DNA from: Cyanophora paradoxa CCMP329
Taxonomy: Eukaryota; Plantae; Glaucophyta
Direction: 5' to 3'
Length of the DNA stretch: 64,000 nucleotides
Assembly (NCBI GenBank): GCA_004431415.1
Contig: QPMI01000297.1
Coordinates: 1-64,000, forward strand
In this document: positions 3,596-44,193 of the stretch, in pieces
Position numbering within the stretch: position 1 is the first letter of the stretch
Layout: every line of letters starts with the position of its first letter
The notes under the pieces: generated by a model
What the model saw: the letters and a program-made list of their open reading frames with translations, nothing else
The model's database searches: none
Told to the model about the DNA's origin: nothing
Position numbers and translations under genes: made by a program

Positions 3596-4745
3596 AGCGC
3601 CGCCCCCACTCCTCCTGCCCGCCCGCCCCTTTCTTCTCTTCACCCCCCCCTCCACCCCCCCCCCCCACCCACCCCACCCACCCACCCGTCGGCCCGCTTC
3701 CCCGCCTCAGACCTCGCGAGGCCGAGTCGGATCTACCGCAGTGCGGAAGGCCTGTACACGTGAAATCAACTTAGTTGAGCCCGGGCGTAAACGACGTGAC
3801 CCGGGCGGATCCCGGATCCGGAGTCCTAACTTGGTAGCTCACTGGTAGCCACGTGAACCCGTGAACCCGGCTCAGCCTATAGCTATAGCTAACTTGGTAG
3901 CTCATGATCACTGCCAGGCTGAGCATTTCAATTCGAATTTGTCGCCTTGGCGGGGGACTTCGAACTTCGGAATTCGGAAAGCCCTTCAAGGCTTCAACAG
4001 TGAACGCCTCGGCGAAGGGGGCCCGGGGCCCAGGGTCAACGTTAACGCAATACGCATACGTCCGGGGCCTTCAAAGGCTTTATATAATTAGCAAGTTTCA
4101 AGTCTCAAGCCTTGAAGTTTGAACGTTAACGTTTGATTCAAGTTTTGCTAGTAGGCTAACCCTAAGCTGAAGGCCCTGAGTCTCATGATCATCTGCTCTG
4201 CATGCCTGGTGATCGGATCATGCGATCGGATCATAAGCGGCCAAATCATGCCCATGCATATGACGTCACCCGGTGTGACCCCGAGACTCTCTGAGAACCG
4301 TGAATATTTGCTTCAAGGCTTCACTGTCACAGTGTCAGAGGCCCCGCGGCCCACGCATACCGTCGCCGAGTCGTACGGCTAAAGGGCCGCGGGGCCCCCA
4401 GCTCCAGGGGCCCGCGGCCGGGGCGGCCGGCCCGGGCCCCGGGGGTTGTGATCAATGACACTGATGATGACGAGATGGCATGGGCACGTTCCAATCATTG
4501 CCAGTTGAATCACTGAGTCATTGAATTTGCCAGTTGGTTCGAAATTTGAAATTAAAAAACTTCAATCGCGGTACTGCCGCAGTCACTGAGTATACGGAGT
4601 ACTAGGGTCGCCCCCCCTGCGGGGCAGCGGCCTCCAGTACGCATACTTGACAATTGTAAGTTGACCATTGTATACGTAAAGAGTCAGCAGTGTGCGACAC
4701 ATCAGCGAGCTTCGGGAGTTTATTATTAGGAGACAAGACTCCTGA

Positions 4746-7552
4746 TCATGAAATGCAATAAGCCGAGAGAGCAAGAAAGCAATCGTAAGCACTGACGAGG
4801 CTAGGCGCCGCGGGCGCGGGCGGCGGGGCGACCGGGGCGGCCGCGGGCGCGGGGCCCGAGGGCGGGGCGCGGGCGAGGCGCTGGACGACGGCCTCCTCCC
4901 GCGCCCGCATGCGCTCGAGCAGCAGCGCCTCCCGCGCCGCGCCCCCCGCGCCTGCTCCCGCTCCACCTCCGCCCGCGCGCCTGTGCAGCCGCCGCCCGCC
5001 CCGCCCGCGCGCCCCGCCGAGGATGCTGGGGGCCGATACGGCGCTCTGGGGGCGGTGAGGCGCGGCGGGGCGGGGGCGGGGCGGGGCGGGACCTCGACTT
5101 CGACGACGCTGCCGCCGGGCTGCTCGAACGCCTCCGGCGAGCTCCCCGGCGGCCGCCCGCGCCCCGCCCCGCCCCGCCCATCGCCCCTCGCCCCGTCCGC
5201 GCCACGCCCTGCAGGCGGCCCGGGGTCGCCTCGCGCCGCGTGGACCCCTGGCGCCGGTCGTCAGCGAGGGGCGGCCTTCGGAGAGGGGCGGCAGGGCGCA
5301 CGGGAGCGGGGCGGGCGGGTCGAAGAAGACGGGGGCGGGGCGAAGGCCGGGGGGATGTCCTGCGGGGGGGCCCCGAAGAAGGGCCACGTGCACGCTGCTG
5401 GCCCCCCAGGGCCGCCGCCGGGGCGGCGGGGCGCCCCAGGGGGCGGCCGGTGGGGGCAGGTGCGGGAGGGGCGGGGCGCGGGGCGGGGCGGGAGGGGCGG
5501 GGCGTCGGGGGCGGGGCGAGGAGGAGGGCCGGGGACTCGACGAGGGACGCCCGCCCCGCCCGAACGCCCCCGCCGCCCCGCGCCCCAGCCCCGCCCTCCT
5601 CCCACCCCGCCGCCCCGCCCACGCCGCCGCCGGGTGCGCGGAGGCCAAGGCGGGGCGCACGGCCGCCTGCAGCGGGGGGCCGGCGTACGGGTCGAAGGGG
5701 TGCGGCGGCTGCACGTGCGGGCGGCCTCGTGGAGGGCCCCCGGCAGGGGCCGCCCCGCCCCGAACACCTCCCATGCTGCGGCGGCTGCGGCTGGGGCGGC
5801 TGCCGGTGCGGGGCCTGCCGCGGCAGCCGCCCCGCCCCGCGCGCCGCACTCTCCTGCCCCTCCTTTTCCCCGCCGAGCTGCCGGTAAGGCGGCTGCGCGA
5901 GCGGGGAGCGGGTGTGCGCTGGCGGCTGCTGGTGGCGCAGCTCGTCGCGGCGCGGGGCCGGCTCGGGGTCGGCGACGTGGGCGGCGGCGGCGCTGCGCTC
6001 CACGTGGCGCTGGAGCACCTTCTCGTAGTACCCCGCGCTGCGTGCGCGTCAGCCCCTGCCATCCTTCCCCGCTCCCCCGCCCCCGCACCTCGGCGGCGGC
6101 TTGCGGCGCTGCGCGGCGGGGCCGAGGGCGGATGCGATGGTGGTGGGACCGGGGCCGGGGCGGGGGCCGGGAGCGGGCGGGTCGTCGCCGAAAAGGGCGG
6201 CGCGCGTCTCTGCGTCGATCGCCTGGTTCCAGCTGATGGCGCCGGCCCCGCTCCCCCGCACCCCGCCCCGCGGCCCCTCCTCCCGCCCCTCCTCCGCCGC
6301 GCTGCTTACGGAGGCCCGCGGCGGCGCAGCGGCCCCTGCCCGCGCGCCGCCGCGTGTCGGTGCATCGCCGCGGCCGGAGAGGGGCGAGGCGGGGTCGATG
6401 GAAGCGGCGCGCGGGGAGACTTGCGCGGGGGCGCCCCTGCGGGACCCAGGCGCGCTCCAGGCGGTGGTGCGCCGGCGAGTCGCGCCCCGGCGTGCGCGGG
6501 GGCGGTGAGAGGAGCACCGGCGGCGGGCCGCGCTGCCGCGCGGGCCCCGAGGGGGCGACGGGCTCGCCCCGGGCGAGTGGGCCGCGCGGGGCGGGGCGTC
6601 GGGGAGGGCGGCGGGGCTCGCGGAGGGTGGCCTCCGGGGCCGGCGAGGGCGAGGGCGGCGTGGCCGGCCCCGCGGCGGCACGGCGCCCGACGCGAGCCTC
6701 GGGAGCTGCCGGCGGCGGAGGCGCCGCGGGGTGCGGCGGCGAGGGGCCGGGGCTCGGGGCTGGGATGGGGCGCGGGGCGGGGGCGGGGCGGGGGGCGGGG
6801 ATGGCGGCGTGCTGGACGAGAACCTGCGGGCAGTCAGGCGGGCGGCTGCGCGGGGCGGGGCGCCGGCCGGCCCGCGCCTCGCCATCGCGCCGGAGGAGCA
6901 CGTCCAGACCTCCGCCCCGGCCCGCCCTGCGCGCCCCGCTCCGGTGTCGGCGCAGGCGCGGGCGGGGCGCGCGGGCGGGGCCGCACGGGCTCGACGCGGA
7001 TGCGCAGGCGCCGCCCGTCGGGACGCAAAACTGTCAAAGCCACCTCCTCTCCCTCCCCGTCTCCGCCCGGTGCAGGCCCGGCGACGGCGCAGCGGACGGC
7101 GGCGCGGCATCGGAGGTGGCGGGGAGTGGTGGGGCGGGGCCGGGGCCGGGGGGGGCGGGGGCCGGGGCGGGTGGCCTGCGGGCCGGGGGCGCGATGAGAA
7201 AGCCGACGGGTGCGGTGCGGGACGCGCGCCTCCGGCGCCCGCGTCGCCCCCGGCTCCCGCCGGGCCGGGCCCGCCCCGAACCGGCCGCACCGGGCGCGGG
7301 CGGCGCGGGGGAGGGGGCAGTAGAGGTGGGGGCGGGGGCCGGGGAGGGCGGGGGCCCGGGCGGCCCGGCGGGGGCGGCGAGGCGGGGCTCCTCGAGGGCG
7401 GCCCGCGGGCCCTTGCGCTCCGGCCGCTCCGAGTGGCGCGGCGAGGCCGGCTTGCTCGGCCCGGCGACCAGAAGAGCAGGTGCGTCGGCCGCTCCGTCGT
7501 GGCCCCCGCCCGCTCCCCGTGCTCTCGTACAGCGCGCGCTCCCGCCCGCCGC

Positions 7553-17626: not shown

Positions 17627-17741
17627 GCATATCTGTGATCTACGCTGGGCGCAATTGACAAAGCGGCTCTCTAGCTGTTCAGAGATCGCAGCACATCTGT
17701 GATCTATCATAGTATGCTGGGCGCAACTGACAAGGCGGCTC
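17627..17741. repeat. Two ~44-bp direct repeats; second copy carries an 8-nt palindromic insertion
   Basis: gcatatctgtgatctacgctgggcgcaattgacaaagcggctc versus gcacatctgtgatctat[catagtat]gctgggcgcaactgacaaggcggctc. Confidence 0.9.
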
Positions 17742-18837: not shown

Positions 18838-18950
18838 ACTAGCTAAGCAGCCTAAGCTGCTAAGGCTGCTAAGCCTGCTAAGGCTGCTAAGGCTGCTAAG
18901 GCTGCTAAGGCTGTATAAGCCTGCTAAGGCTGTATAAGCTGTATAAGCCT
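18838..18950. repeat. 9-bp-period minisatellite (ctgctaagg / ctgtataag variants)
   Basis: About 12 tandem degenerate units in a divergent promoter region. Confidence 0.9.
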
Positions 18951-27723: not shown

Positions 27724-28200
27724 CCCAAACAGCACGGGTATAGTTGAAGCGTTGACGGTCTAGGAGTGGTCCCGCGCGCCCGTAGCTTAGAAAGAGCAGT
27801 GATCACTTCAACGGTTGCTTGCGAGCTGCAGACCCCGCGCTGTGGCGGGCCGGGTCCCGGGCCCTAACGATCGCGAGGGGAATTCGAAAGGGGAATGGGA
27901 GCTTGCAGCTGGGTACCGGTGTATCGTAGTAGCTGCAGTTGGGCGAGCTGCAGACCCTGCGCTGTGGCGGGCCGGGTCCCGGGCCCTAACGATCGCGAGG
28001 GGAATTCGAAAGGTGCACGGAAGCGATTTCATCTTTGGCTAATATTATATTATTATTAATGCTATATTAATGCTCCGATCCCCTTTTCTCCATCAGGGCA
28101 CCAGTCCCTGCGGGTTACGCTCTATCCCAAACAGCACGGGTATAGTTGAAGCGTTGACGGTCTAGGAGTGGTCCCGCGCGCCCGTAGCTTAGAAAGAGCA
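27724..28200. repeat. A-B-B-A composite repeat (A = 75 bp identical at 27724-27798 and 28126-28200; B = 71 bp at 27821-27891 and 27943-28013)
   Basis: Direct sequence comparison; the B copies differ by one base. Confidence 0.92.
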
Positions 28201-28268: not shown

Positions 28269-31203
28269 CTAACTACTGCAACTCAATGATTCACGAAGCC
28301 AATTCTTCTGCGGGCTAAATTCCTCGCCCTTCTCAGTCTTCCCAACCTCCTTTGCTTGGCAAACCGAACAGAACCAGGGGGCTGGTGGCAAGTTCTCAGG
28401 GTCAACCTGAGCAGCAGAATGCAGATCAACGCAGAGACAAAGACAGCCACAAGCACATACACATAGCATACCCCAATGCAGTCGAGATGGAAGGCACGCG
28501 GGCATCCATCACAGCTTTGAAACAATCAGCACGTTACTGAAAGAAAAGAAGAAACTTCTCAAACAAACCAGAGGAGATGCCCTTCAGTCCCTCTACACGT
28601 ATCACACCAGTCGTTGTTCGGATCAGAGTCGCCATCATCTGCCTGATGTATACCACCAATCGGGAGCTTGGCAGACGCACTGCCAGCAACCTCGAGCGGC
28701 GCATCGGGCTCAGAGCGTGGAGGGATGCGCCGTTGGTCTCCATCCAAAGGTTCGAGTTCTGAAACAGCACTGCTCGTTATGAGCCCGTCGTCCGAGGCGG
28801 CCATGGACAAGACCAGTGGAGGAACATCGCATGGCGGGCACAAATGACGGCTGGATGCGTCTGCTGAATGAGGCGTCTCGTCTGTGAGCACGGAGATTCC
28901 CGGTGAGGAAAGGATGAGGCTCGGGGAGTGAATCGTCCGGGCTCCTGAAAGTTCTGATGAGGTGAAGCTCAACGCAGCTCCAGACATCAAGGGAGACTCT
29001 GCCTGCCGACCGAGCGCCGCTTGAACAGCTGCCATCTCTGGCGTGGCACCACTAGCAAAAGTCCCAGATCGAAGGGGCGTTGTCAGCCCGAGCAGCCGTC
29101 CAGTCGAGTCTTCTTCGGGCTGGACGAGAGTCACGTGACATCCAAGTGCAACGGAAATCGGGCGTACGGGGGAGAGAAACTCGAAACCACTCGGTAGGTG
29201 AGGAAGAGATGGCGTGGAAGGGGTTGCGAGAGGAGCCTGTGGGGGTGTGTGTGGTGGTAATGTGAGGTGAGACTGCAGGCCGACAGCTGTGTTCTCTTGC
29301 TGCCCCTGCGATGCACCCTCCAGAGCGCGAACCTCTGGCAAAGGGTTTGATTCCTGGTAGAAGCAGTTTAAACCAACTGGGCACCATGAAACGAAAACAA
29401 CGTACGAGACTGGTGCCAGGGACATCGCGAGCGAGAGGGGTGCTCGACAACGAGTCTCCTGAAGCTTCAAGGCCGTTCGATACAGTCGACGAGGGTGCGG
29501 AAACTGGGGCGGGTGGTGGAGGTGGGATAGCGAGGGCAGGAAGTGAAGGCGACGCAAGAACTTCTGCGATTGGGGCGGGAGCCATCGGGGCTGGTGGCTG
29601 AGCAAGGCACGTAAGAGGGGGACCCATACAGGCAAAGAGGACATGCATACCTCGAGGGATAATGCCAAAGATGCACGAGTGCGCTTGATGTAGTCGTTCC
29701 AGGACGTCAAGTGGGCATCGATGGCAAGCCGGCGTGCCTCCAGCACCCGCCGCACCATGGCAGCAAGCAACTGCTTGTCCTGAACGCTGAGATCAGCTTC
29801 TATGTCCCACAGAATGGCGAGAGCATCAACGCACACGCTCGAGCTCAGCGAGATGCCGCGCATTCAAGCGCTTCACCCATTCCGACAACTGCGCCAGCTG
29901 CACCCACCCAGGCTGCACCTCGCGCTGCGGCAGAGTTAAGAGGTCACCAGGCAGGAAAGGAGGAACACGACGTGCCTGCTGGTGCAGGATGAGGCGGCTG
30001 AGATTCTCAGTCTGCGCTGCCCCCAGAGCATCGATGTACATGGTGCGAGCACTCATAACCTCCATTGTCTGAGCCGAGTGAGCAGTAAGAGCAGGAAAAG
30101 AGGGGGAGGGGGGTTTGGGGGTTGCGAGGGGAAGGAGGAGGGTGAGGGGTAGCGAGGGGAAGGAGGGGGGGGGGGGGGGGGTGGAGGAGGGGGTAGGGAA
30201 AAGAGAGAGGGGGAGCGGGCGGGAGGAGTGGATAGAGAGGGGGGGCGATCACCTCGTCCTCTTGATGGCACACGAGATCCATGAGCTCGGTATGTTGCCT
30301 CGCCAATATTTCCTGAACTGAGACGAAGTGCTCGGACCCGAGCGGGGCCTCGTTCTGCAAAGCAAGCTCTTCCTCTGTGGGCTCCCGAGGAGGCGGTGGC
30401 GCTGGTGGAGGCACTGTTGAGCGCATCGGCACATGCGGTGGGGGCTGCAGTGGCCCACTTCCTCCAGCCCCGGCGGCGGTGGATCGTTTTTCAACTGCTT
30501 TTGTATCTGGCTGGTTGCTCGTTGACCCGCGGCCCGCTGGAGGTCGCCCGACGCCATTGGAGTCCCCGGGTTGCCTCAAAGTATGAGACCGGCCACCCGA
30601 GGATGAGCCGTGCCCGGGAGGGCGACCCCGGCTCCAACTCCCGTTCGACTGCTGGGGAGGTCGAAGCGGCTGGTGCGGTTTGGGTGGGGGGGGAGGCTGG
30701 TATGCGCGACCGGCCGCCGGAACGGAGGGTGGAGGGCTGGCTGAGACAGGGACGGTGGGGATCACCGCGGGGACGGTTGGAATGACCGCCGGAACCGTAG
30801 CTATTGGGCCGGAGTGAGGCGGAAGAGCGGAAGATACAGGAGGAGGTACCACGGCCAGCGGGGAGGAGCCAAGCATGAGAACGTGCGAGTTTGCCCCTGC
30901 GCCCGGGGGAATGGAAGGAGGGAGCGAGCTTGGCCGGGAGGCAACCGCTCCGGATGCGAGGATGTGCTCCATGCACGATGCGGGGCCGCCGGAGGAGCTC
31001 GGCAGTGCAACGGTAGCGGCCGCGCCGGGCGGCGGGCCGGGGCCGGTGCCGGAGCTTACAATCCCTGCCCCAGGCCAGTCGGGAAGGCGGACGGTTCTTT
31101 CCGCTCCAGCTTCCACGAGGTCAGGGGGCCGTGGCGTGGCCGGAGGAACGCTCGGATCCGCATCTGCTACTCCTTCCAGCTTCGGGCGCTTCTCCGCTCG
31201 CAT
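28269..31203 (-). CDS. Pro-rich protein with C-terminal PHD finger
   Basis: NNDWCDTCRGTEGHLL|CDGCPRAFHLDCIG|VDPENLPPAPWFCSVC is a C4HC3 PHD finger; NLS-like EKRPKL at the start. Confidence 0.8.
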
Positions 31204-32203
31204 CGTGGGGCGCTGCGCCGGAGCGCTCGCGCCCAATCTCAAGCGCGCCCAAACGCGCCTGATGCCGCTGCTCAATCAAGGCTGGAGCTATGCCGCTGTG
31301 ATTTCTTTTGCCAGCGACGGGAGGCTTTGCAATGAACAACGCAGCGGCTCCGCGCTCGCTAAACGAGGGGGCGGCTTCGGCGCTCGCTGGCGCCTTGCGT
31401 AGCGCGCAGAGCTGTACCCCCGTGTGAGATCAAATTTCATCGAAATTCATACCGTGCGCGCCGGCAGGCGCGCTATTTCCGCCGCCCGCAGCTATATATT
31501 GCCCACAATTACGTGATCACCGCCGCCGTTTGACGTCTCGCTCTGGCTTGCGTTCAGCAATAATTATATATATATAATATTGACACATGTACATATAAAC
31601 GTACATGTACACGTGCACCCCGCGCTCTGGCGCTGGCAGGCCACTGGGCCTGGGCCACCCGCCGGGCCGGCCCAATCCTGCGTGCGCTTTTCAGCGAGCA
31701 GCACCCACATCGGGCAACAGTGTGCTCTCTGCGCTCTCTTCGATTTTGATATTAGCTATCATAGACTTCGATTTACATTTCAGAAATTTGATTTCGATCT
31801 GACCCAACGACCGTGCCCGCTCGCAGGCGAATCAGCGCTATCTCTGTATCTGTCTGTATCTGTATCTCTGTGTGCACCGTGGCACAGTCTACTCCAGCAC
31901 CCGTGCACGTGTGCTCACATATTCGAGTGCATTTGGGCGCAGGCCTGGCCAGTTCTACGCCTAGCGAGCGTAGATCTAGACAGCCGCTGAGCATTATTTG
32001 ATTGTTGTATACATTCTGTCAACGCTCTACTTTCAAGTTTAGACCCCACCTTGCACCTCCTGAGACAAGCGGGGGCGGGGGCGAGTCGAAGACCTCGTAA
32101 GCAATTGAGATTTAGGACACCGCTAGCTTTTCCGCTGGTCTTCATCCAAAGGTTCGAGCCCTGAAACAGCACTGCTCGTTATGAGCCCGTCCTCCCAGAA
32201 TCG

Positions 32204-35200
32204 CTATGAAAGCATCTGAGAAAGGAAGGTGCTGATCTGGGAGACGAGCTGCTTGTCCTACGTTGCCCCGGCCACAATGAGCGACCTCGCACACTCGCCA
32301 TGCGTTGCAAGAAAAGCACCTTCTTTACATCTTGGACCTTCTTTTGCTGCATGTTGAGGATGCGAGTAGCGATGGCATCCAGCTCCAGCCGCCCCCGTTC
32401 ATTCACTTCATCTGTTCGGCTGCTGTTAGGCAGTTCAAAGAGAACTACGATCCCATCAATGCAGACCAAATGCACGAGAGAGGTTGATTGCCTCTTCCCT
32501 CAGCAGTTCTATGTCTGTGTTGATTTGCTTCTGTGCCTTGCTGCGGTTCAGCAGAGCTCGCTTGAAGTCCCCAGCATCGTTTTGAAGGCTCTTGATCTCA
32601 GCTGTGAGTGTGGCCATCAATATTTTAATGGACTCTTTGGTTCCTTTGATAAAACACATTGCCTTACCCAAGAAGCTTGCTGAAAGTCTCTGCTGTTGAG
32701 CATTGTATTTCGATGCCAGCACATCTCTGCAAACATGTGAACGATGAAATCGGAAATTTGCGAGAGGGCAAGCAAGCTTCAAAACACGAGCCTTTGTTTC
32801 TGGGTTCGGTCACTCGCAGAGGCACACACTGCAGAGAGCTGAGCTTCAGCTTGCTTCGTAACCGTCACGATCCTCGCGTGCTTCTTGGATGCGGCTTTCG
32901 CAACAGCGTCCTGAATAACTGCAGGAGAGAGACTCATCAAGCCGCCATGGGTTTCCATTCAGTCTTCTAGAGGACAGACCTCGGAGGATGTGGCCCACGC
33001 TGTCATCCTTAGTCGCTCCGCGCTCCATACCATCGTCCGACAGGCTCTCTTTGCAAACTGTGAGATACCGAAATGTTTTGAGCTTGTTACACATACCATC
33101 GGCAGTCTCCCGCTCGGTCTCTTCTTCCACCTGCACAGGCGACGAGAAGCTCACAGTCGAACGCTCTGGGCGGAAACAGTCAAAAGGAGGACGAACGAGG
33201 CTGGGGGCAGGCATAAGCACGTGAACCAGCTCCCATCCTCTTGCTGCGAGGGCCAGCACCACTTCTCTCCTGCAAACGCTCTTCTGGTAAATTGGGTGCT
33301 GTCTCAACTGTTGAAGTGCGACCATTGGTCTTCTCCAAATCATCCCAATCTGGGAGGGATGGCTCTTCAAGCATGGCTGCGTCACGATCTCGTTTCGAAG
33401 AAGACAGTTTTAGAGAAGGAGGTTTGGTGGTCCCCAGAGAGCCGCTGGCAGGTGCCGATTCTGTGGTTCGAACTCTGACAGCCGCTGGTTTAGCTGGTTT
33501 GGCGGCCTTCCTTGGTGTCACGTCTTGCTCTGTGAAAGAATAAGCAGGTTGAAAACCTGTGCCCGCAACCAGGTACGTGCACCTTGCACTGGCCGTTTAC
33601 GTTTGGGCCCTGGCACTTTTGCAACGATAGCAGTTGTCTTCTTGGATTCCACAGCACGTGAACTCCCCTGATGGCCGGCATCAGCATGACAAAGGAAGCA
33701 CGGGGAAGAATGCTCAAAGAAGCGAGCCTCAGAAGCATCGCCAGGACCTGCATTGGTGGCAATCTTGCTGGAGGCACGCCCCGTTTGCTGAGTGAATATT
33801 ACTTAGTGCGATATTCATGGTCGTCCCTTCATCAAAACGAGAGCTTACCTTGCGTCCTCTGGGCATGGGTTCTGGCACGCGTGGTTCGCCAGAAGCTATC
33901 CTGGCATGTGTCGACATGTCAAAGGAAATAACCAAACATAGAATGTTTTCTCAACCCACTCTGACGATTGCAGCGGCGCTGCCTTTGCCTCGCCTGTCAC
34001 GATGTCTGCAAGGCGGACTCCAGGCTTCCCGCGACCTGCATCTACCTGGTGGACTCCTGCCTCGGCACTGGACTGCAAAGCACTGGGCTGAGATCCTCTT
34101 GGGGCTTTGGCTGCAGCGTTTCCTGACACAGCGCTAGCATCGCGAGATGATCTCGAGTCCTCCGCTTCAAGAGCTGGTTCTGGGGCCACTGCAGAGCATA
34201 ATTTACCTTCTGAAAAAGGAAGCATCGGAGGCGGGGCACCCGTTTTCGGAGCAGGGTTCTGCTCCTTGGCAATCTCGTTGACAGGAGATGGCGGCTCTCC
34301 CTGCTCTTGGGCTCCAACCGATTTGTGATCCTCCTTGGCAATGTCGCCTACAGGAGACGAAAGCTTTCCCTGCTCTTGAACTTCGACCGATTTCTCGACT
34401 GCACCCGAGGTCCCCTGGCGAAATTGAAGAGCTTGCCGGTGCTTTGGTCCTTGGCGCAGCACGGCTCGAGAAACCTGACGCATGATGTAACTGAAAGTTG
34501 TTGGCAGAAGAACCTTCGTATGTGCACCTTGGTGAACTCAGAATGGGGTTTCTCGGACTGCTCGCTTACATTCTTCCTTCGATTGTCCTTCCAAGTTCAA
34601 GAGGAAAAGGTTGTCAGCATCGGCACCGATTTCGATTGCAGTGCAAGTCACCTGCTCCGAGGGCAGGGCCACTCTCGACCCTTCAGCAGGTAGAAACATC
34701 GGTCCGTCTTCCTGATTTTTGTGCGCCTGATGTTCGTTATTTTTTAAGAATTTCTTTAAAAATGCAGTTAATGCATGGGCAAGCATACCACTTGCTCATC
34801 TCGCGACTTGACGATCTGCCCACTCGCCCACTTGACGCCTGCAGATGCTGTATTGCGGCGCATGAGTACTGCTGGTTCGTACAAAGAGCACCCTGGAGCA
34901 CCATGTGGCGCTATTGGGAAGGTGATCGTGGCTTCCAGCCCGGTTTTCCGGCAGTCGTGCAGTAGTCCATCGTATCCACTGTCAGTAAGCTGATGCTACG
35001 TGATCAGCTGCCGATGAAAAACGCAGTGCCAAAGCAATAAGAAAGCGAACCTGCAAGGAGATGTTATTGCCAGATTTGCTCATCCTATGCACACCATGGT
35101 ACATCAAGTCGATACGGGCCGGCTGCACCCGAAGTGAGACCCTGGCCAAGGCAAACTGCAATACGGAACAAGCAAACGCACATTGTTATTGTCCAGGTAA

Positions 35201-37181: not shown

Positions 37182-38552
37182 CTAACCTAGGTCTTCATCA
37201 TACTGGTCACCATATAATCCCTCACCGCCGATCGTTCTGCTGTCGCGCGCCACGCTCATCTGTGCCAGCATGGCGTCCAAAGCTGCTGCAGGGTCGTCTG
37301 TCTCCTGCTGCTGAGGCGCCTGCTGCTGCTTGGGAGACTTGCCCCCTCTGCTGGTAGGTGCCTGCGAAAGCGTGGACGACATCCAACTGGCTTGGTACTT
37401 GTCCTCCCGTATCCTCTCAATATTGTGTTGCGCTTCAAGCTCCGCCTTCACGTTTTGGTATCGTTGCAGCAGCCTAGAGAGAGTGTTGGATGCACAAGAT
37501 GAGCAAAAAAAATGACGATGCACCTCTCTAGATCAAGCTGCCGTTGCTTCTTCTGCTCCTCTCGCCCAGTCTGCACGCGTTTATGCAGCGCCTGCATTTC
37601 CATCATCTGCTTGCTCTGGAACTTGGAGATGAGATTCGCAATCTTCTGGTCTCGCTGATTCCGCAGCTTCTCCAGCTCCCACGCTTCCTGCAACAGCTCT
37701 GCTCGGAAACAACAAGCGGCTTGGGTAAAGTATATTGCGAACCAGGTTGTCAGCTTTCAATTTCACTTTATGTGCATCTGCGTATTCTTTCTGCTTGGCG
37801 AGTACTTCCTGTATTCTCCGCAGGTTCAGGAGCTCCTTCGAGAACTTTGGACTATGTTCTGGCTTCATCTGGAGCTGCTCAATGAACTCAGCGTACTCCG
37901 CCGCATGGCGATCCTGGGCAGGAAATCAAATTCGGGGCACAGAAAATAGGGGCCCAAGAAAGCTCACCCGCATCGCTTGCTCCAGCTCCTGCGCTTTTAT
38001 TTCGTACTCCATCATTTTCTTGTCCCACATCTGGTTGAACTGTTGAAACTGCCGGCCGCCGTTAGCCCGCGGGCGTACTACAGGCAGAAAACACCTACTT
38101 CAAGCATGTGTGCTTCCTCGACTCCAAGCCGCTCAGCAATCTGCCGAGACCGCATAGCTTCGCGCCTCCTGTTCTCTTCACTGCACGCGCCCTGATTTAG
38201 CCAAGGCGCGCGAGTTTCCGGCCGAGCGCTGTCAGGCGTGGCGCTCACTGGCTGCGCAGCTCTTGAAGCCTGTTCTTAGCTATCTCTGCTTCGACGTATT
38301 TCCCTTGCCGCTCACAGCTTTTGCGGTGCTCCTCAAGAATTTGTCTGCGCGGCCTGTTTACGGAGAGCGGGATAGCGCCGGTTGCTAAAGTACGCACAAA
38401 AAGTCCCGAATCGCTGCCTGCACGGAGGTGGCGGTGCGTCAGGCCGCGTCAGGGAACGCACACGGTGCTTTGGTCAAGGTCACGCGGCAAGGGCAGCTGA
38501 CCTCATCGGGCTCTACCGGCGGCGGCTGCCCGTAGTCTACGGCGTCGCCCAT
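37182..38552 (-). CDS. Conserved uncharacterised coiled-coil protein of the type seen in flagellated protists
   Basis: ILEEHRKSCERQGKYVEAEIAKNRL; PKFSKELLNLRRIQEVLAKQKEYADAHKVK; RLLQRYQNVKAELEAQH; clean introns. Confidence 0.75.
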
Positions 38553-38786
38553 GGTTTCCCAATTGGTCGTCGCCGGGGGTACGTCGATATCTCTCTACAC
38601 GCGTACCCTCATTCTAAGATGAATTTTGACAAATTTGAGTGTGAGTGGCAGCACATCGAATTCGACGTGACTCACGCAATGTCAGCTAGCTGTTTTGACT
38701 AGCTGCGTGTACGGTCTACTCCCATAAGCGGGCAACACAGGGCCCGCATAAAAACTTCCAAAATTTTCCCTGCTTCCCTGCCTGAT

Positions 38787-39540
38787 TCAGGATTTTGCTG
38801 ATATTTTCCCTGCCTGAACCAGGTGGGGCACCTCCGCAGCCAACCATGGGGAGAGCTGCCGAGAAAGCTCAGCAACAGACCCAGATATACGCAAGAAATG
38901 TCGAGGTCACCCCAAGGGCAAGCGCGTGGGCGATGCCGAAGTGCGGAACATTGCGAGCCCACAGCGGTTGGAAGTGGATGGTGAGACAGATCTTGCCGCC
39001 CCTGCCATGCACATGAAGGCTGCGATCGGCGAGCAGACACCGCATACGGAGTACGTACCTGTACATTTTTGCAGTCATGCCCTCTAGCTCAGGGATCTCG
39101 ATTTCCGGAGCAGTGGCAGGGTAGGCGATGGGGATCTGCAATTTGTCAGCGGGCCATAGCGATGAAACATGCGGCGTTCGCACATCGAACTGGAAATCGA
39201 ATTCGTACTTGATCAGGTTGTAGATGTACCAGCACTTGCCTGTCCACCTGAGGCGCGCGGCACTCAGTCGCGCGCAATCAATTGCGCGGAGGCGCAAGGG
39301 CTGGCCTAGTGCCTTGAGGGTTGGACTCGATAGTGAACCAGTCGTTGTCCGACTTCTTGTTGTTTTCGATGTACTGCGCACGCGTCAGCTCTTCTGGAAA
39401 GGAGGCGAGCGCTGTCGCACCGTGATGAGCGCTTTGTACTCCTCTTTCAAGCGCTCCTTGTAGGACTCGCCATCGCGCGGACCGGCCCTCACAGTCAGGA
39501 GAGGGATCTTTTGCACTGTCTGCTTTGTTTGTTCGTCCAT
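38787..39540 (-). CDS. UFC1: UFM1-conjugating enzyme
   Basis: [12 protein letters not shown]...[10 protein letters not shown]; NDWF.IESN; WTGKCW; [46 protein letters not shown]. Confidence 0.97.
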
Positions 39541-39635
39541 GTGCGCCGCCCTTGCGACCTTTTTTTTCGGGCCGGGTACTGAGCGCGAGCGGCAAGGCCG
39601 ACGGAAGCAGCCGCTCAGCCGAAACCCCTTCGTCT

Positions 39636-41094
39636 ATGGAGGTGCGTGCGTAGCGATCGGGGCGTTGCGCGGGCGGAGACCTCGATCGGGGTCTGGTCTC
39701 AATCAGGGGATGCGAGCGCATAGTCGGCATTCCAGCGCGTAGTCGGCACGCCAGTGCAACGTGGCCAGATCCTCGATGCGTTGGCTGCGGTGGCTGTAGA
39801 GGCGCAGATTGAGCCGTGCCGCGCAGGTCTTCGGTGTGGACGGAGTAGGAGTGGCTGCCGACCCAAGGATGACACTGCGCGTTGCTTTCCAGGGAGAGCC
39901 TGGGGCGTACTCTGGTGCGCCCTTCGTGTGGCGCCGGAAAGACGTCGCTAACGACGCGGCAGAGGGCGCCGCGGTAGACGTGTTCGGCAGCGACGTTCAG
40001 ACGATTCCTTGTGTGTCGTTCGAGAAGGTAGCGAGCTTGTAGACTTCCGCGAGCGCCCGCGAGTCTCACGCCCGCGCAGCTGTTCGACGCGGTGGAGAGT
40101 GGGATGGCCGACCGCGGCGTGCTCCCTATTGAAAACAGCCTGGCGGGAACGATTCACCACAACTATGATTTGCTTCTGAAACGTAATCTCTGCATCGTTG
40201 GCGAGTATGACTATCCAGTGAGGTGCGGCAAAGGAGCCGCACGTAATTTCTGTGCTTGTCCATGAGCGGCCTTCGCTCTTCAGACACTGCCTTCTCGCGC
40301 TGGAGGGCGTCCAAATGTCGGACATTAAGCGCGTTCTTAGCCACCCGATGGCCCTTGCACAGGTTAGTCTGTGTGCACTCACTGCGATGCACTTCGAACA
40401 TATCTGCAGTGTGATGGCTACTTGAACAAAATGGGGCTTCATCGAGAGGCTACGTATGACACAGCCGGAAGGTCAGCGTGTTTAAATGTCAGTGCACACG
40501 CGGCTCACCACCTGAGCAGTGCAAAGCGGCTTCGGGATGAGCATTTGATGGATGCTGCGGCAATTGCAAGGTGGCTTTTTGTTTCTGCCGAGCTGGCTTG
40601 CATGGCTCTCTAATTTCCAAGTATCTAGTGCTCGGGCTGGGAAGCTTTATGCCTTGAATGTGCTGGCCTCCAACATCGAGGATGATCCTAAAAACTTCAC
40701 CCGTTTCCTGGTGCTGGCGAGGGAGCCTGTGAGCCCGCCCCTCACCAAGCCTTGCAAGACGTCAATCGTGTTTTCTCTCAAAAACATCCCGGGTGAGAAC
40801 GATTAACCACAGCGATTGCTTTGCAACACTAATCAACGTTTCCCAGGTGTTTTGTTCAAGGCACTTTCCGTGTTCTCGTTGAGAGACATTGACCTCACAA
40901 AAATCGAGAGCCGCCCATGCAGACTTGCATCCACCAGCCCATCGGAGCCCATCAAGCGCTGGGAGTACCTCTTTTACCTGGATTTTGCGGCCAATGCAAA
41001 CGATGAGGTGGCCAAGAATGCTCTTCGGCACCTCAGCGAGATAGCACCCTTCGTCCGAGTGCTTGGAACATACACGAGGCATAGCGATAGTTGA
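39636..41094 (+). CDS. Prephenate/arogenate dehydratase (PDT + ACT domains), no transit peptide evident
   Basis: [13 protein letters not shown]; [19 protein letters not shown]; SHPMALAQC; NFTRFLVL; KTSIVFSL; [10 protein letters not shown]; YLFYLDF. Confidence 0.95.
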
Positions 41095-41518
41095 ATTGAG
41101 TTTTGTCTGGTGTACGCTATTAGCTAGCTGCATCTGTGAACTCAGCCTGTGTGGGCTACACATAGGCAGGTGCAGCCCTCACTGGCCGGCACGGCTGTTC
41201 CCCCCCAAGGCTTGTAAGGGAGCTTCGGAGGTATCACTCTGATGACTCCCCAAGGGTGCAGCATCGCGTCGACGTCGTCGGTGCCACGGTGGGCAGTGGG
41301 AGTTCCTGCAGATTGACGTCAGTGCACGTGGGGCCGCCGGCCGCCGGGCCGGGGCTGTACGATGGTCGGAAGCCTGTGCACGTGCCTGTGCGTGATCGAA
41401 GGCCGCCGGGCCGGGCTGGGCCTCAATGTTTTACTCATTGAATCGAACTCAAATGTTAACCTGTCACAGTGTTACAACGCCGTGACGTTAACCCCCCTGT
41501 TTCTGTTTCGATTCAAGT

Positions 41519-41709
41519 TTCAACTGCCGCGCTGAAGTGCGACCACTGGCCCAGTGGTCTTCTCCAAATCACTGAGTCATCCCAATCTGGGAGGGATGGC
41601 TCTTTAATCATAGCTGCGTCACGATCTCCGAGGCTCGTTTACGAGAAGACAGTTTCAGAGAAAGGGGTTTTGTGGTCTCCAGAGAGCCGCTGGCAGGTGC
41701 CGATTCTGT
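41519..41709. repeat. Intergenic copy of exon segment 33303-33464 carrying three 8-nt palindromic insertions
   Basis: Colinear alignment with few substitutions; insertions at 41547-57, 41569-79 and 41626-36. Confidence 0.92.
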
Positions 41710-41897
41710 AGCCCAGACAGGCGTAGTTCACAGATGCAGCTAGCTAATCGCTGAGCCCAGGTGTAGGTCCATCGCTGGGCACGTAAATCCACGTGAAAAC
41801 AGCTCCTCAAAACAGCAATGTAAGCTAACAGCTCGTCAAAACAGCTAGCTGGCATTGTGTGTCACGTCGATAATGTAGTGGTACTCACAATCGAATG

Positions 41898-44193
41898 CTA
41901 GTCAAGGTCCAAGGGAGCTTCCGAAGCCTGGGCTGAGCCTGGGCTTGGGCGTAGGATGGGGCGAGCTTCTTCCTGTTGCGGTGGCTGGGAGAACTGGGAG
42001 GCGAGGGGGAAACGTGTCGACAAGTTGAAAAGCTCCTCGTCACTCCTCAGCCGGGACGCCAGTTCCCGACCGACGAGCTGGTTGTACAGCTGCTGAAGGC
42101 GATGGCTGCTTGAAAGGCGATCAGCAGCCAGGGGCCCCAATCCCGTGCCTTGCACAGACTCGCGAACTACTGTGTTGAAGAGTGCTATCGTGTCCGAAGG
42201 AGTACGCCGCCGTTTCGTGGAATCGCCACCACGATAAGCACAGCTGAAGGGAGCCTGTTTTTGCATATGCTCCTGTTCGGCGTCATCTTCCGTAATTGTC
42301 GCCCGCCAGTAGGCCACATCCTCCTGCACCCAAGCGCGTCATTCACGGGTCCAAGGAATCCAGGGCACCTGTGTCACCTGCGGTAATTGCGCCACCCAAT
42401 CTTCAGTGGAGACCGACCGAACCGAAGAATCCTGCTGGTAAGCCTACATCCTCATCAGCTGAAAGATAGGCCCAAAGCAACAACGAGCCTGGGCACCTGG
42501 TATGTTGTGAGCACGTAGTTGGAGATCATATTAGAAGCCATTCCGCCCATCATTCCGATGCCTGAAGGTGGCTGGCCGGTGCCAGGACCATTCAGATCGC
42601 CAAGGATTCCGAAAGAAGATGTCAACTGGTTAACTACAGATCGGATGACAGCTGGGACATCGGAGATGCCACCGCGTAGGCATGGGGCAAGCGCCTCCAC
42701 CCATTCTCCAATCATCCGGGTAACCCATCTCTTCAACGCAGAAGAGAAGGGATGCGGGCTCTCGGGTGTAGGCAGAAGAGGGTCCGCAAGCAACACAGTG
42801 TCCAACAAAGTAGAGAGATGGATGCGAACAACCCCGGCAGTGACACCACGAATGTCACGCCCTGCCACAATGCGTGCACGAACATCCTGGTGACAGAATC
42901 CGTAAGAAATGGCCTCGCATCTTGGAAAGCCTCGTACCTCAGGGAGTGCTGTGTCAGCAACCGAGTCCAAAAGCCCCCCAACGAGGTCATCTACTGCTTC
43001 ACGGCGCCGAGCAGGACTCCGATCATTCTCGAGCAAATCTTCAAGAGCGTGGCGGCGCAGGGGTTCCTGCAGCCGCTCAAGCGGAGCCATGTTTCCACCA
43101 ACAACCTGAATCGCAGGTTCTCAGAAGCAGGCCACGAACACGTCAGGGGGCATAAAGTACCATGAGCATGTCAGGAATCGAAAGTGTATCCATTACAACG
43201 TTGATGATCCGTTCAACAGGCCCCGCCATCTCTGCGATTCCAAATTAGGTGCAAACTTCGCTCTTTGCCTTGCCATGCACACCTGAATCGTCAAGAATAC
43301 CCTCTGCGTCCAAACCCCTGGCAATGTTCCGGACCATTGAGCTGAGTGATGTTGGGCCGCTTTCAGTCGACCCTTGAGGGGCCCCCGCATTGCTCGCAAC
43401 TCCAGATATCATCTGCATCATTTGAGGAAGCATTTGCTGCATCAGGCGAGCAATGTCAGGCTGAGCAGGCCGAGGTTGTTCCGAATGACTCCGAGGAGTC
43501 TGCTGGGGCGAGCTCTGCAGGTTTGACGATGTTGAGTTTGCCGACTGCTGCCCTTGATTCGTTGTCGGAGATGCCCCAACAGCCTGTGCATTTACCGCAG
43601 GTGCTCCCTATCGATCTATTAATGCTGTGGTGCGATGATTCATGCAAAAGTCCACACACCTGAGGGGCTAAGCCGCCTGTGAAAGCTTGGAAGAGGGAGG
43701 CAAGATTCGGCGCAGGGTGCTGGCCAGGAGCCTGTGGCTGCCCTGCCTGACCAGCTGATGATGGTAACCTTTAGCAAGGCATTTGCGAAGAGCAGAAAGG
43801 GGTACGAAGCACCTGGGCCGAGGAGAGACCCCACCATCTGAAACATTCCAGCAAGCGGATTAGGCTGAGGGGTGCCACTACCAGGCATGGCACCTGCGTG
43901 GCAAAATCCGATATCAGTTTTATGTTCACTCGACGAAGTCATGTCGTACCCTGGCCTCCCAGCAGTCCTGTGATGAGATTGGAAAGGTTTGGAGGAATAG
44001 GCGGCGGAGCAGCAGGCATCTGCCCTGGCTGGGGTGGGTGAGCAGGAGCTCCATAGGTCGAAGGGCTTGTCTGCTGTTGCGAGTGCACGTGTGGCTGTTG
44101 TTGATTGATAGCCACCCGATCTGGGGCTTGTTGGCGGCTGTCAGCTTGCCCAGGTTGCCCGCTCTGAGCATTGGCTGTCGCAGGCGGTGGCTG

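Follow-up and report, generated by a model that had tools for sequence, protein, structure and literature searches.

How does one and the same eight-nucleotide palindromic insertion come to be written repeatedly, around ever-different triplets, into the DNA between two genes? The question arises from a spacer at 41 kb in a 64,000-nt stretch of the Cyanophora paradoxa genome (hereafter the window), where a triplet X is found expanded to X-C-rc(X)-G-X. The window is gene-dense, with short introns, 62% GC and a TTAGGG array from 62658, and the spacer (41095-41897) lies between two convergent genes: the 3' exons of a prephenate dehydratase gene on the left (40630-41094, plus strand; PF00800, E 2.8e-8) and, on the right, a gene whose last open frame (41898-42329, minus strand) has no Pfam match. 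A preliminary description had listed ten of these motifs, all of which were recovered at their positions, and had read them as the scars of a very active cut-and-paste system.

Insertions between inverted-repeat arms

The scars at 41 kb lie between two inverted arms, the left at 41107-41160 (plus strand; recognised by its family likeness up to ~41221, its outer end being uncertain) and the right at 41707-41761 (minus strand), which are only 85% complementary; the left arm begins 12 nt past the prephenate dehydratase stop. In all four sequencing runs the summed contig depth of the arm core is ~20-30 times the single-copy level, and the host element therefore belongs to a dispersed multi-copy family. 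Adjoining the right arm is a captured piece of coding exon (41534-41709, plus strand) whose source gene is 8 kb away. Inverted-repeat arms, a captured exon piece and the lack of a transposase are likewise features of Pack-type non-autonomous TIR elements, although here the ends, the target site duplication (TSD) and the superfamily remain candidate readings only. The arm sequence had no match in the metagenome or viral contigs searched.

It is the captured exon that gives the polarity of the change. With three +8 scars (X=TGG, 41547-41557; X=TCA, 41569-41579; X=CTC, 41626-41636) taken out, no gap is needed to align the copy to 33313-33464, and 12 of 152 bp are mismatched; the three insertions were thus described exactly, and the source segment correctly apart from its start, since the clean alignment begins at 33313 and not at 33303. 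The source segment falls within an open frame (33180-33521, minus strand) of a long gene with introns, and because the three scars break this frame in the copy, the changes are insertions in the copy. Short-read contigs from the four runs show no differences over 38450-41708, and a paralogous contig carries the source's substitutions without the eight nucleotides at 41569 and at 41626, so that assembly error is excluded. The captured exon bears 3 scars per 12 substitutions, a ratio with a wide error (roughly 0.05-0.7 per substitution).

Two further sites bring the empty and scarred pairs for the +8 insertion to five. One is at 17705-17715 (X=TAT), within a short local duplication whose other copy (~17627-17670) is empty at 17632. 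The other is at 41281-41291 (X=GTG); a further copy of the host repeat in the genome lacks this scar as well as a shorter, six-nucleotide insertion at 41268-41276 (X=GTC), one mismatch being left after collapse, and in the contig that holds the empty allele of 41281 the joint runs from 41180 to 41287, with the intervening letters present. Other copies of the host repeat have scars of their own where the 41-kb copy is empty, namely a +8 (X=GAA) and a +6 (X=GTA, with one extra base). The empty and scarred alleles foreseen in the preliminary description were thus seen five times for the +8 class, whereas the occupied allele was never met. No polymorphism was detected at the 41-kb locus across the four runs, which span 2012-2024 and whose contigs drop rare variants, and the system can be called very active as a matter of historical rate but not on the evidence of these runs, which are identical at the locus.

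Local duplications elsewhere in the window provide related observations. At 3830-3925, a +6 scar (X=TCA) stands beside a +8 scar (X=CTG) in one of two duplicated segments, and this +6 is missing from the second. The spacer at 27724-28200 contains two local duplications (75 and 82 bp) with +6 scars in both copies, which indicates that these scars are older than the duplication. In the right-arm region (41707-41761) and in the family's loose ends there seems to be a +8 scar (X=GCT), old and fixed, that has decayed in different ways in the 41-kb copy and in the family consensus. Finally, a diverged inverted-repeat pair (38633-38705 and 41829-41896; 78% over 73 bp) flanks the UFC1 and prephenate dehydratase genes, shares a AGCTAGCTG core with the inner arms and is single-copy at 80% likeness; these are possibly older ends of the host family.

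Two scar classes with a free triplet

The window holds 37 matches to X-C-rc(X)-G-X where 6.2 +/- 2.7 are expected from local shuffles that preserve trinucleotides, and the excess is sharper for triplets containing A or T (23 against 1.2 in the same shuffles). The triplet is free, with 19 strand-merged classes among the 37 matches, and the two middle letters are fixed as had been proposed: for a 3-bp unit, the pair C/G accounts for 37 matches in the window, C/C for 13 and every other pair for 0-6. Units of 4 and 5 bp have almost no matches in the window, and units of 6-8 bp have none in four spacers. Taken over 2-, 4- and 5- to 8-bp units, other middle letters and +10 forms, there is no convincing excess, the mild surplus of a +4 class and of a 2-bp-unit class consisting largely of degraded scars and repeat-arm motifs. 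GC-only +8 matches outside the clusters, including the previously listed one at 31659, may be due to chance.

The remaining +8 scars of the 41-kb spacer are recognised by motif match. Those at 41339-41351 and 41401-41413 can each be read in two frames (from 41339 or 41341, and from 41401 or 41403; X=GGC or CCG) and each represent a single event, with no empty allele seen; another lies at 41462-41472 (X=TGT), and iterative collapse reveals one at 41477-41487 (X=ACG) nested in a +6 scar (X=AAC, 41476-41492). With the two-frame readings counted once, the interval 41281-41636 contains eight independent +8 events. The motifs are concentrated in two convergent-gene spacers, 3700-4750 and 41095-41897: those with A or T number 15 in these 1.95 kb, as compared with 4 in the ~5.9 kb of further spacers and another 4 in the 54 kb that are left. 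The cluster in the former spacer (3911-4581), which was absent from the preliminary description, is as dense as that at 41 kb; the whole spacer 3700-4750 has 12 +8 and 13 +6 events after collapse. When both classes are collapsed, the two spacers have one event per 42-55 bp; their removal takes away 16.6% of the sequence at 3700-4750 and 13.4% of the 41-kb hotspot and exposes nested events. Together, +8 and +6 scars account for roughly a seventh of the letters in the two spacers.

The second class, X-rc(X)-X, had also gone unmentioned, as had the host inverted-repeat element. It coexists with the first class, as at 41322-41330 and 41376-41384 (motif matches, both X=GTG), and is in excess: the spacer at 3700-4750 has 11 motifs where 0.2 are expected, the 41-kb spacer has 3 (0.1 expected), and 59 lie elsewhere (12 expected). 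Were the C to vary independently at each end, ~73 hybrid +7 forms would be expected; 9 were seen, where chance alone would give ~8, and most of the hotspot examples are nested scars. There being no excess of +7 or +10 forms, the description of the scar as nearly deterministic is borne out. The ratio of +8 to +6 is 15:14 in the two convergent spacers and 4:24 in other spacers (Fisher p=0.004, with regions drawn by hand). Given the lack of a +7 excess and the different class ratio in the two types of spacer, it is likely that the +8 and +6 scars come from two separate generators.

A proposed hairpin model and its rivals

We think it likely that the +8 motifs are the repaired donor sites of a cut-and-paste transposon with C...G ends and a 3-bp TSD. 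A C before and a G after the motif are found in only 1 of 23 cases, and none of the three source sites is so flanked; since the flanks do not template the C and G, both letters must come from outside, most simply as the element's first base at each end. Such a transposon would duplicate a 3-bp target without triplet preference. Its transposase would nick the non-transferred strand at a point one base into the element from either end, so that the terminal C stayed attached to the flank, and the resulting 3'-OH would attack the opposite strand at the element boundary to form a flank hairpin, X-C-rc(X). If host enzymes then opened both hairpins some three or more bases beyond the tip, the identical TSD on both flanks would provide the 3' tails with a shared 3-bp complement, and end joining would yield X-C-rc(X)-G-X; it is this guaranteed complement that would make the product nearly uniform. 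A second enzyme nicking exactly at the boundary would yield X-rc(X)-X. In a toy simulation, which picks the longest microhomology and shows sufficiency only, a nick at +1, with the hairpins opened 3-6 nt past the tip, reproduced the scar exactly for 75-88% of random sites, whereas a nick at 0, the boundary, led to +6 and a nick at -1, in the flank, to +4. The anatomy originally proposed (TSD, first base, inverted TSD, last base, TSD) is thus reproduced by the nick at +1. As haploidy is indicated for the C. paradoxa genome (PMC6704402), there would probably be no homologue from which to restore the empty site, so that scars would accumulate in tolerant spacers.

By analogy, the scar works like a hairpin footprint of the hAT/RAG type. 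Transposases of the hAT, Transib, RAG and MULE groups are known to form flank hairpins (PMC5499845), and hAT elements such as Ac/Ds and Hermes also leave palindromic insertions at the empty site through flank hairpins and microhomology joining (PMC5873905, PMC5499845). The inverted copy of the TSD in every scar here would correspond to hAT-type P-nucleotides, with a hairpin as their presumed source. However, Ds palindromes, which likewise reflect microhomology-guided repair, have at their centre the base complementary to the flanking one beside the element and vary, with 28 footprint types in 128 excisions (PMC5873905), whereas the product here is uniform and centres on a fixed C/G; a hAT-like centre would call for the flanking C and G found at 1 of 23 motifs, and the nick at -1 led to +4 in the simulation. 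The hAT TSD is also 8 bp rather than 3 bp, and it was units of 6-8 bp that had no match in the four spacers. In the case of RAG1/Transib and MULE (Muta1), the flank hairpin is opened by host enzymes (PMC5499845). Their boundary nick reproduces the +6 class in the simulation but not the +8 class, and Muta1 excision is mostly precise, unlike the scars here. TSDs are ~5 bp for Transib/RAG and ~9 bp for MULE, and there is no excess of ~5- or ~9-bp units in this DNA. Footprints of Jordan in Volvox may measure 3-9 bp.

Other superfamilies share single features with the scar. Tc1/mariner elements also leave element-end bases between two TSD copies (PMC4561436), but they do so at a TA target and without a hairpin or an inverted TSD copy, as opposed to the free 3-bp unit and inverted middle seen here. 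PIF/Harbinger elements (mPing) have a 3-bp TSD as well, and microhomology steers their repair (PMC4561436), but their target is TTA/TAA and their excision precise, whereas the scars in this DNA add 8 or 6 nt and impose no particular triplet. The CACTA/En-Spm (CMC) group, with its 3-bp TSD and C...G ends (PMC3193017), was the one named in the preliminary description, and it shares both the 3-bp unit, as read from the scar and not from an element, and the terminal bases. Of the CACTA/CACTG termini the scar reveals only C...G, and no CAC-ended element with a 3-bp TSD is present in the window; nor did we find a description in the literature of CACTA cleavage geometry or of a uniform +8 footprint. 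Because the fit is limited to TSD length and one terminal base, the scar is not assigned to CACTA.

Several observations weigh against the transposon model. No occupied allele was met and the four runs do not differ at the locus; known hairpin footprints are varied and the scar here is uniform; the rate needed is high, the captured exon having 3 scars to 12 substitutions; and no precedent for a hairpin nick one base inside the element was found in the accessible literature. Short perfect TIRs with 3-bp TSDs occur at chance level in the window, and the earlier statement that it encodes no transposase holds for the part compared with Pfam, none of the 26 ORFs or exons having a transposase domain. 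As C. paradoxa repeats are reported to be mostly methylated (PMC12344493), present transposition activity may be low.

Could the scars arise in the absence of a resident element? One such route, in our judgment an unlikely one, is that the same hairpin and microhomology chemistry is started by a nuclease or an abortive transposase: a 3-nt staggered break would be filled in, acquire one untemplated C or none from a polymerase, be sealed as a hairpin, opened and rejoined. This would give both products and would account for the lack of occupied sites and for one event per 42-55 bp, but C addition at each end separately predicts the ~73 hybrids of which no excess is seen, the two classes differ in location, and more unprecedented steps are needed. 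Short inverted insertions can also arise by replication template switching, which makes an element unnecessary and to which the preliminary description would have fallen back; the polymerase would copy the opposite strand for five bases and resume three bases back. For the +8 class this demands C-X-G in the target, which again is the case for 1 of 23 motifs and none of the three source sites, and the simple form of the idea is thereby removed; template switches moreover vary in length, and only the 3-bp unit is enriched here. We accordingly regard it as very improbable overall, largely refuted for the +8 class and formally possible for the +6 class. Least credible of all is a sequencing or assembly artefact or a selected cis-regulatory palindrome. 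The motifs do cluster near gene ends, but no binding site would allow 19 strand-merged triplet classes in 37 matches, and the artefact is refuted by independent short-read contigs of four runs, which reproduce the scars exactly.

A special case of the transposon-excision explanation would make the host inverted-repeat family (41107-41761) itself the scar-maker, moved by an enzyme supplied in trans and inserting into other copies of itself. The family is multi-copy, scars are present in other copies, and in a window-wide search for inverted repeats with TSD(3) and C...G ends it was the top candidate and the sole one outside GC-rich low-complexity DNA. Locally, the element may be read as TGT|C...G|TGT, which is the predicted occupied site, but this tentative reading requires a 1-nt gap between the arms, which are imperfectly complementary as noted above, and the match to TSD and C...G has an estimated 5-30% chance of arising. 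Other family copies diverge beyond 41746 and before 41121 and have GTGT at the supposed right TSD. With ends that differ in this way, the standing of 41107-41761 as an occupied site is weakened, and we consider it improbable that the host family makes the scars. Excision of some transposon with C...G ends remains our preferred explanation of the +8 class.

A possible record of excision

It is tempting to speculate that a transposase that closes the flank hairpin over the terminal base of its element, or a host system descended from such an enzyme, has acted as a nearly deterministic, genome-wide writer of eight nucleotides, a proposition to which we would give even odds. If so, the rate of 8-nt insertion would be about a quarter of that of point substitution in tolerant DNA, and excision scars would be a leading mutational process in C. 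paradoxa and would preserve past transposition in a form that can be counted. Once the element is lost, excision footprints are as a rule too diverse to be recognised, and how much they contribute to sequence evolution has for this reason been difficult to gauge. A scar of constant form lends itself to counting and to dating by substitutions (3 per 12 in the captured exon), and here scars amount to 13-17% of two spacers; the old idea that footprints generate sequence diversity would thereby become testable genome-wide. The scar also predicts, for a transposase group with 3-bp TSDs, a cut one base inside the end, a chemistry that we did not find described. In practical terms, scar palindromes in the C. 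paradoxa genome will look like regulatory motifs and lead alignments astray.

Neither this scar grammar nor a genome rewritten by uniform footprints is described in the literature searched, from which subscription papers were mostly absent, and in the C. paradoxa genome paper (PMC6704402) the word palindrome does not occur and footprints of this kind go unmentioned. New here are the polarity obtained from a coding source, the local rate, the flank and hybrid tests and the empty alleles in paralogous copies. A narrow test for the paired-scar pattern returned two metagenome matches and one bacterial match, none of them scar-dense, and thus gave no hint that the grammar occurs in other organisms. 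In a bacterial contig (L003, 3020-3130) the motif occurs seven times with a 17-bp period, as a tandem array apparently unrelated to the scars.

The window has other features that may be recorded. GC content drops from ~80% (1-25000) to ~55% (25000-62600) toward the telomere as introns pass from GC-rich to AT-richer, and at 62198-62660 only ~460 bp separate the end of a katanin-p60-like AAA gene from the TTAGGG array, which leaves hardly any subtelomere. A direct repeat of ~500 bp (53419-53922 and 55445-55966), identical over ~400 bp and starting with GTAAGGGG twice, is read as a recent duplication or conversion. A 67-bp repeat of 91% identity links two neighbouring minus-strand regions (28730-28796 and 32132-32198) and is perhaps another captured piece, and a spacer at 18852-18950 holds a 9-bp tandem array with the unit CTAAGGCTG.
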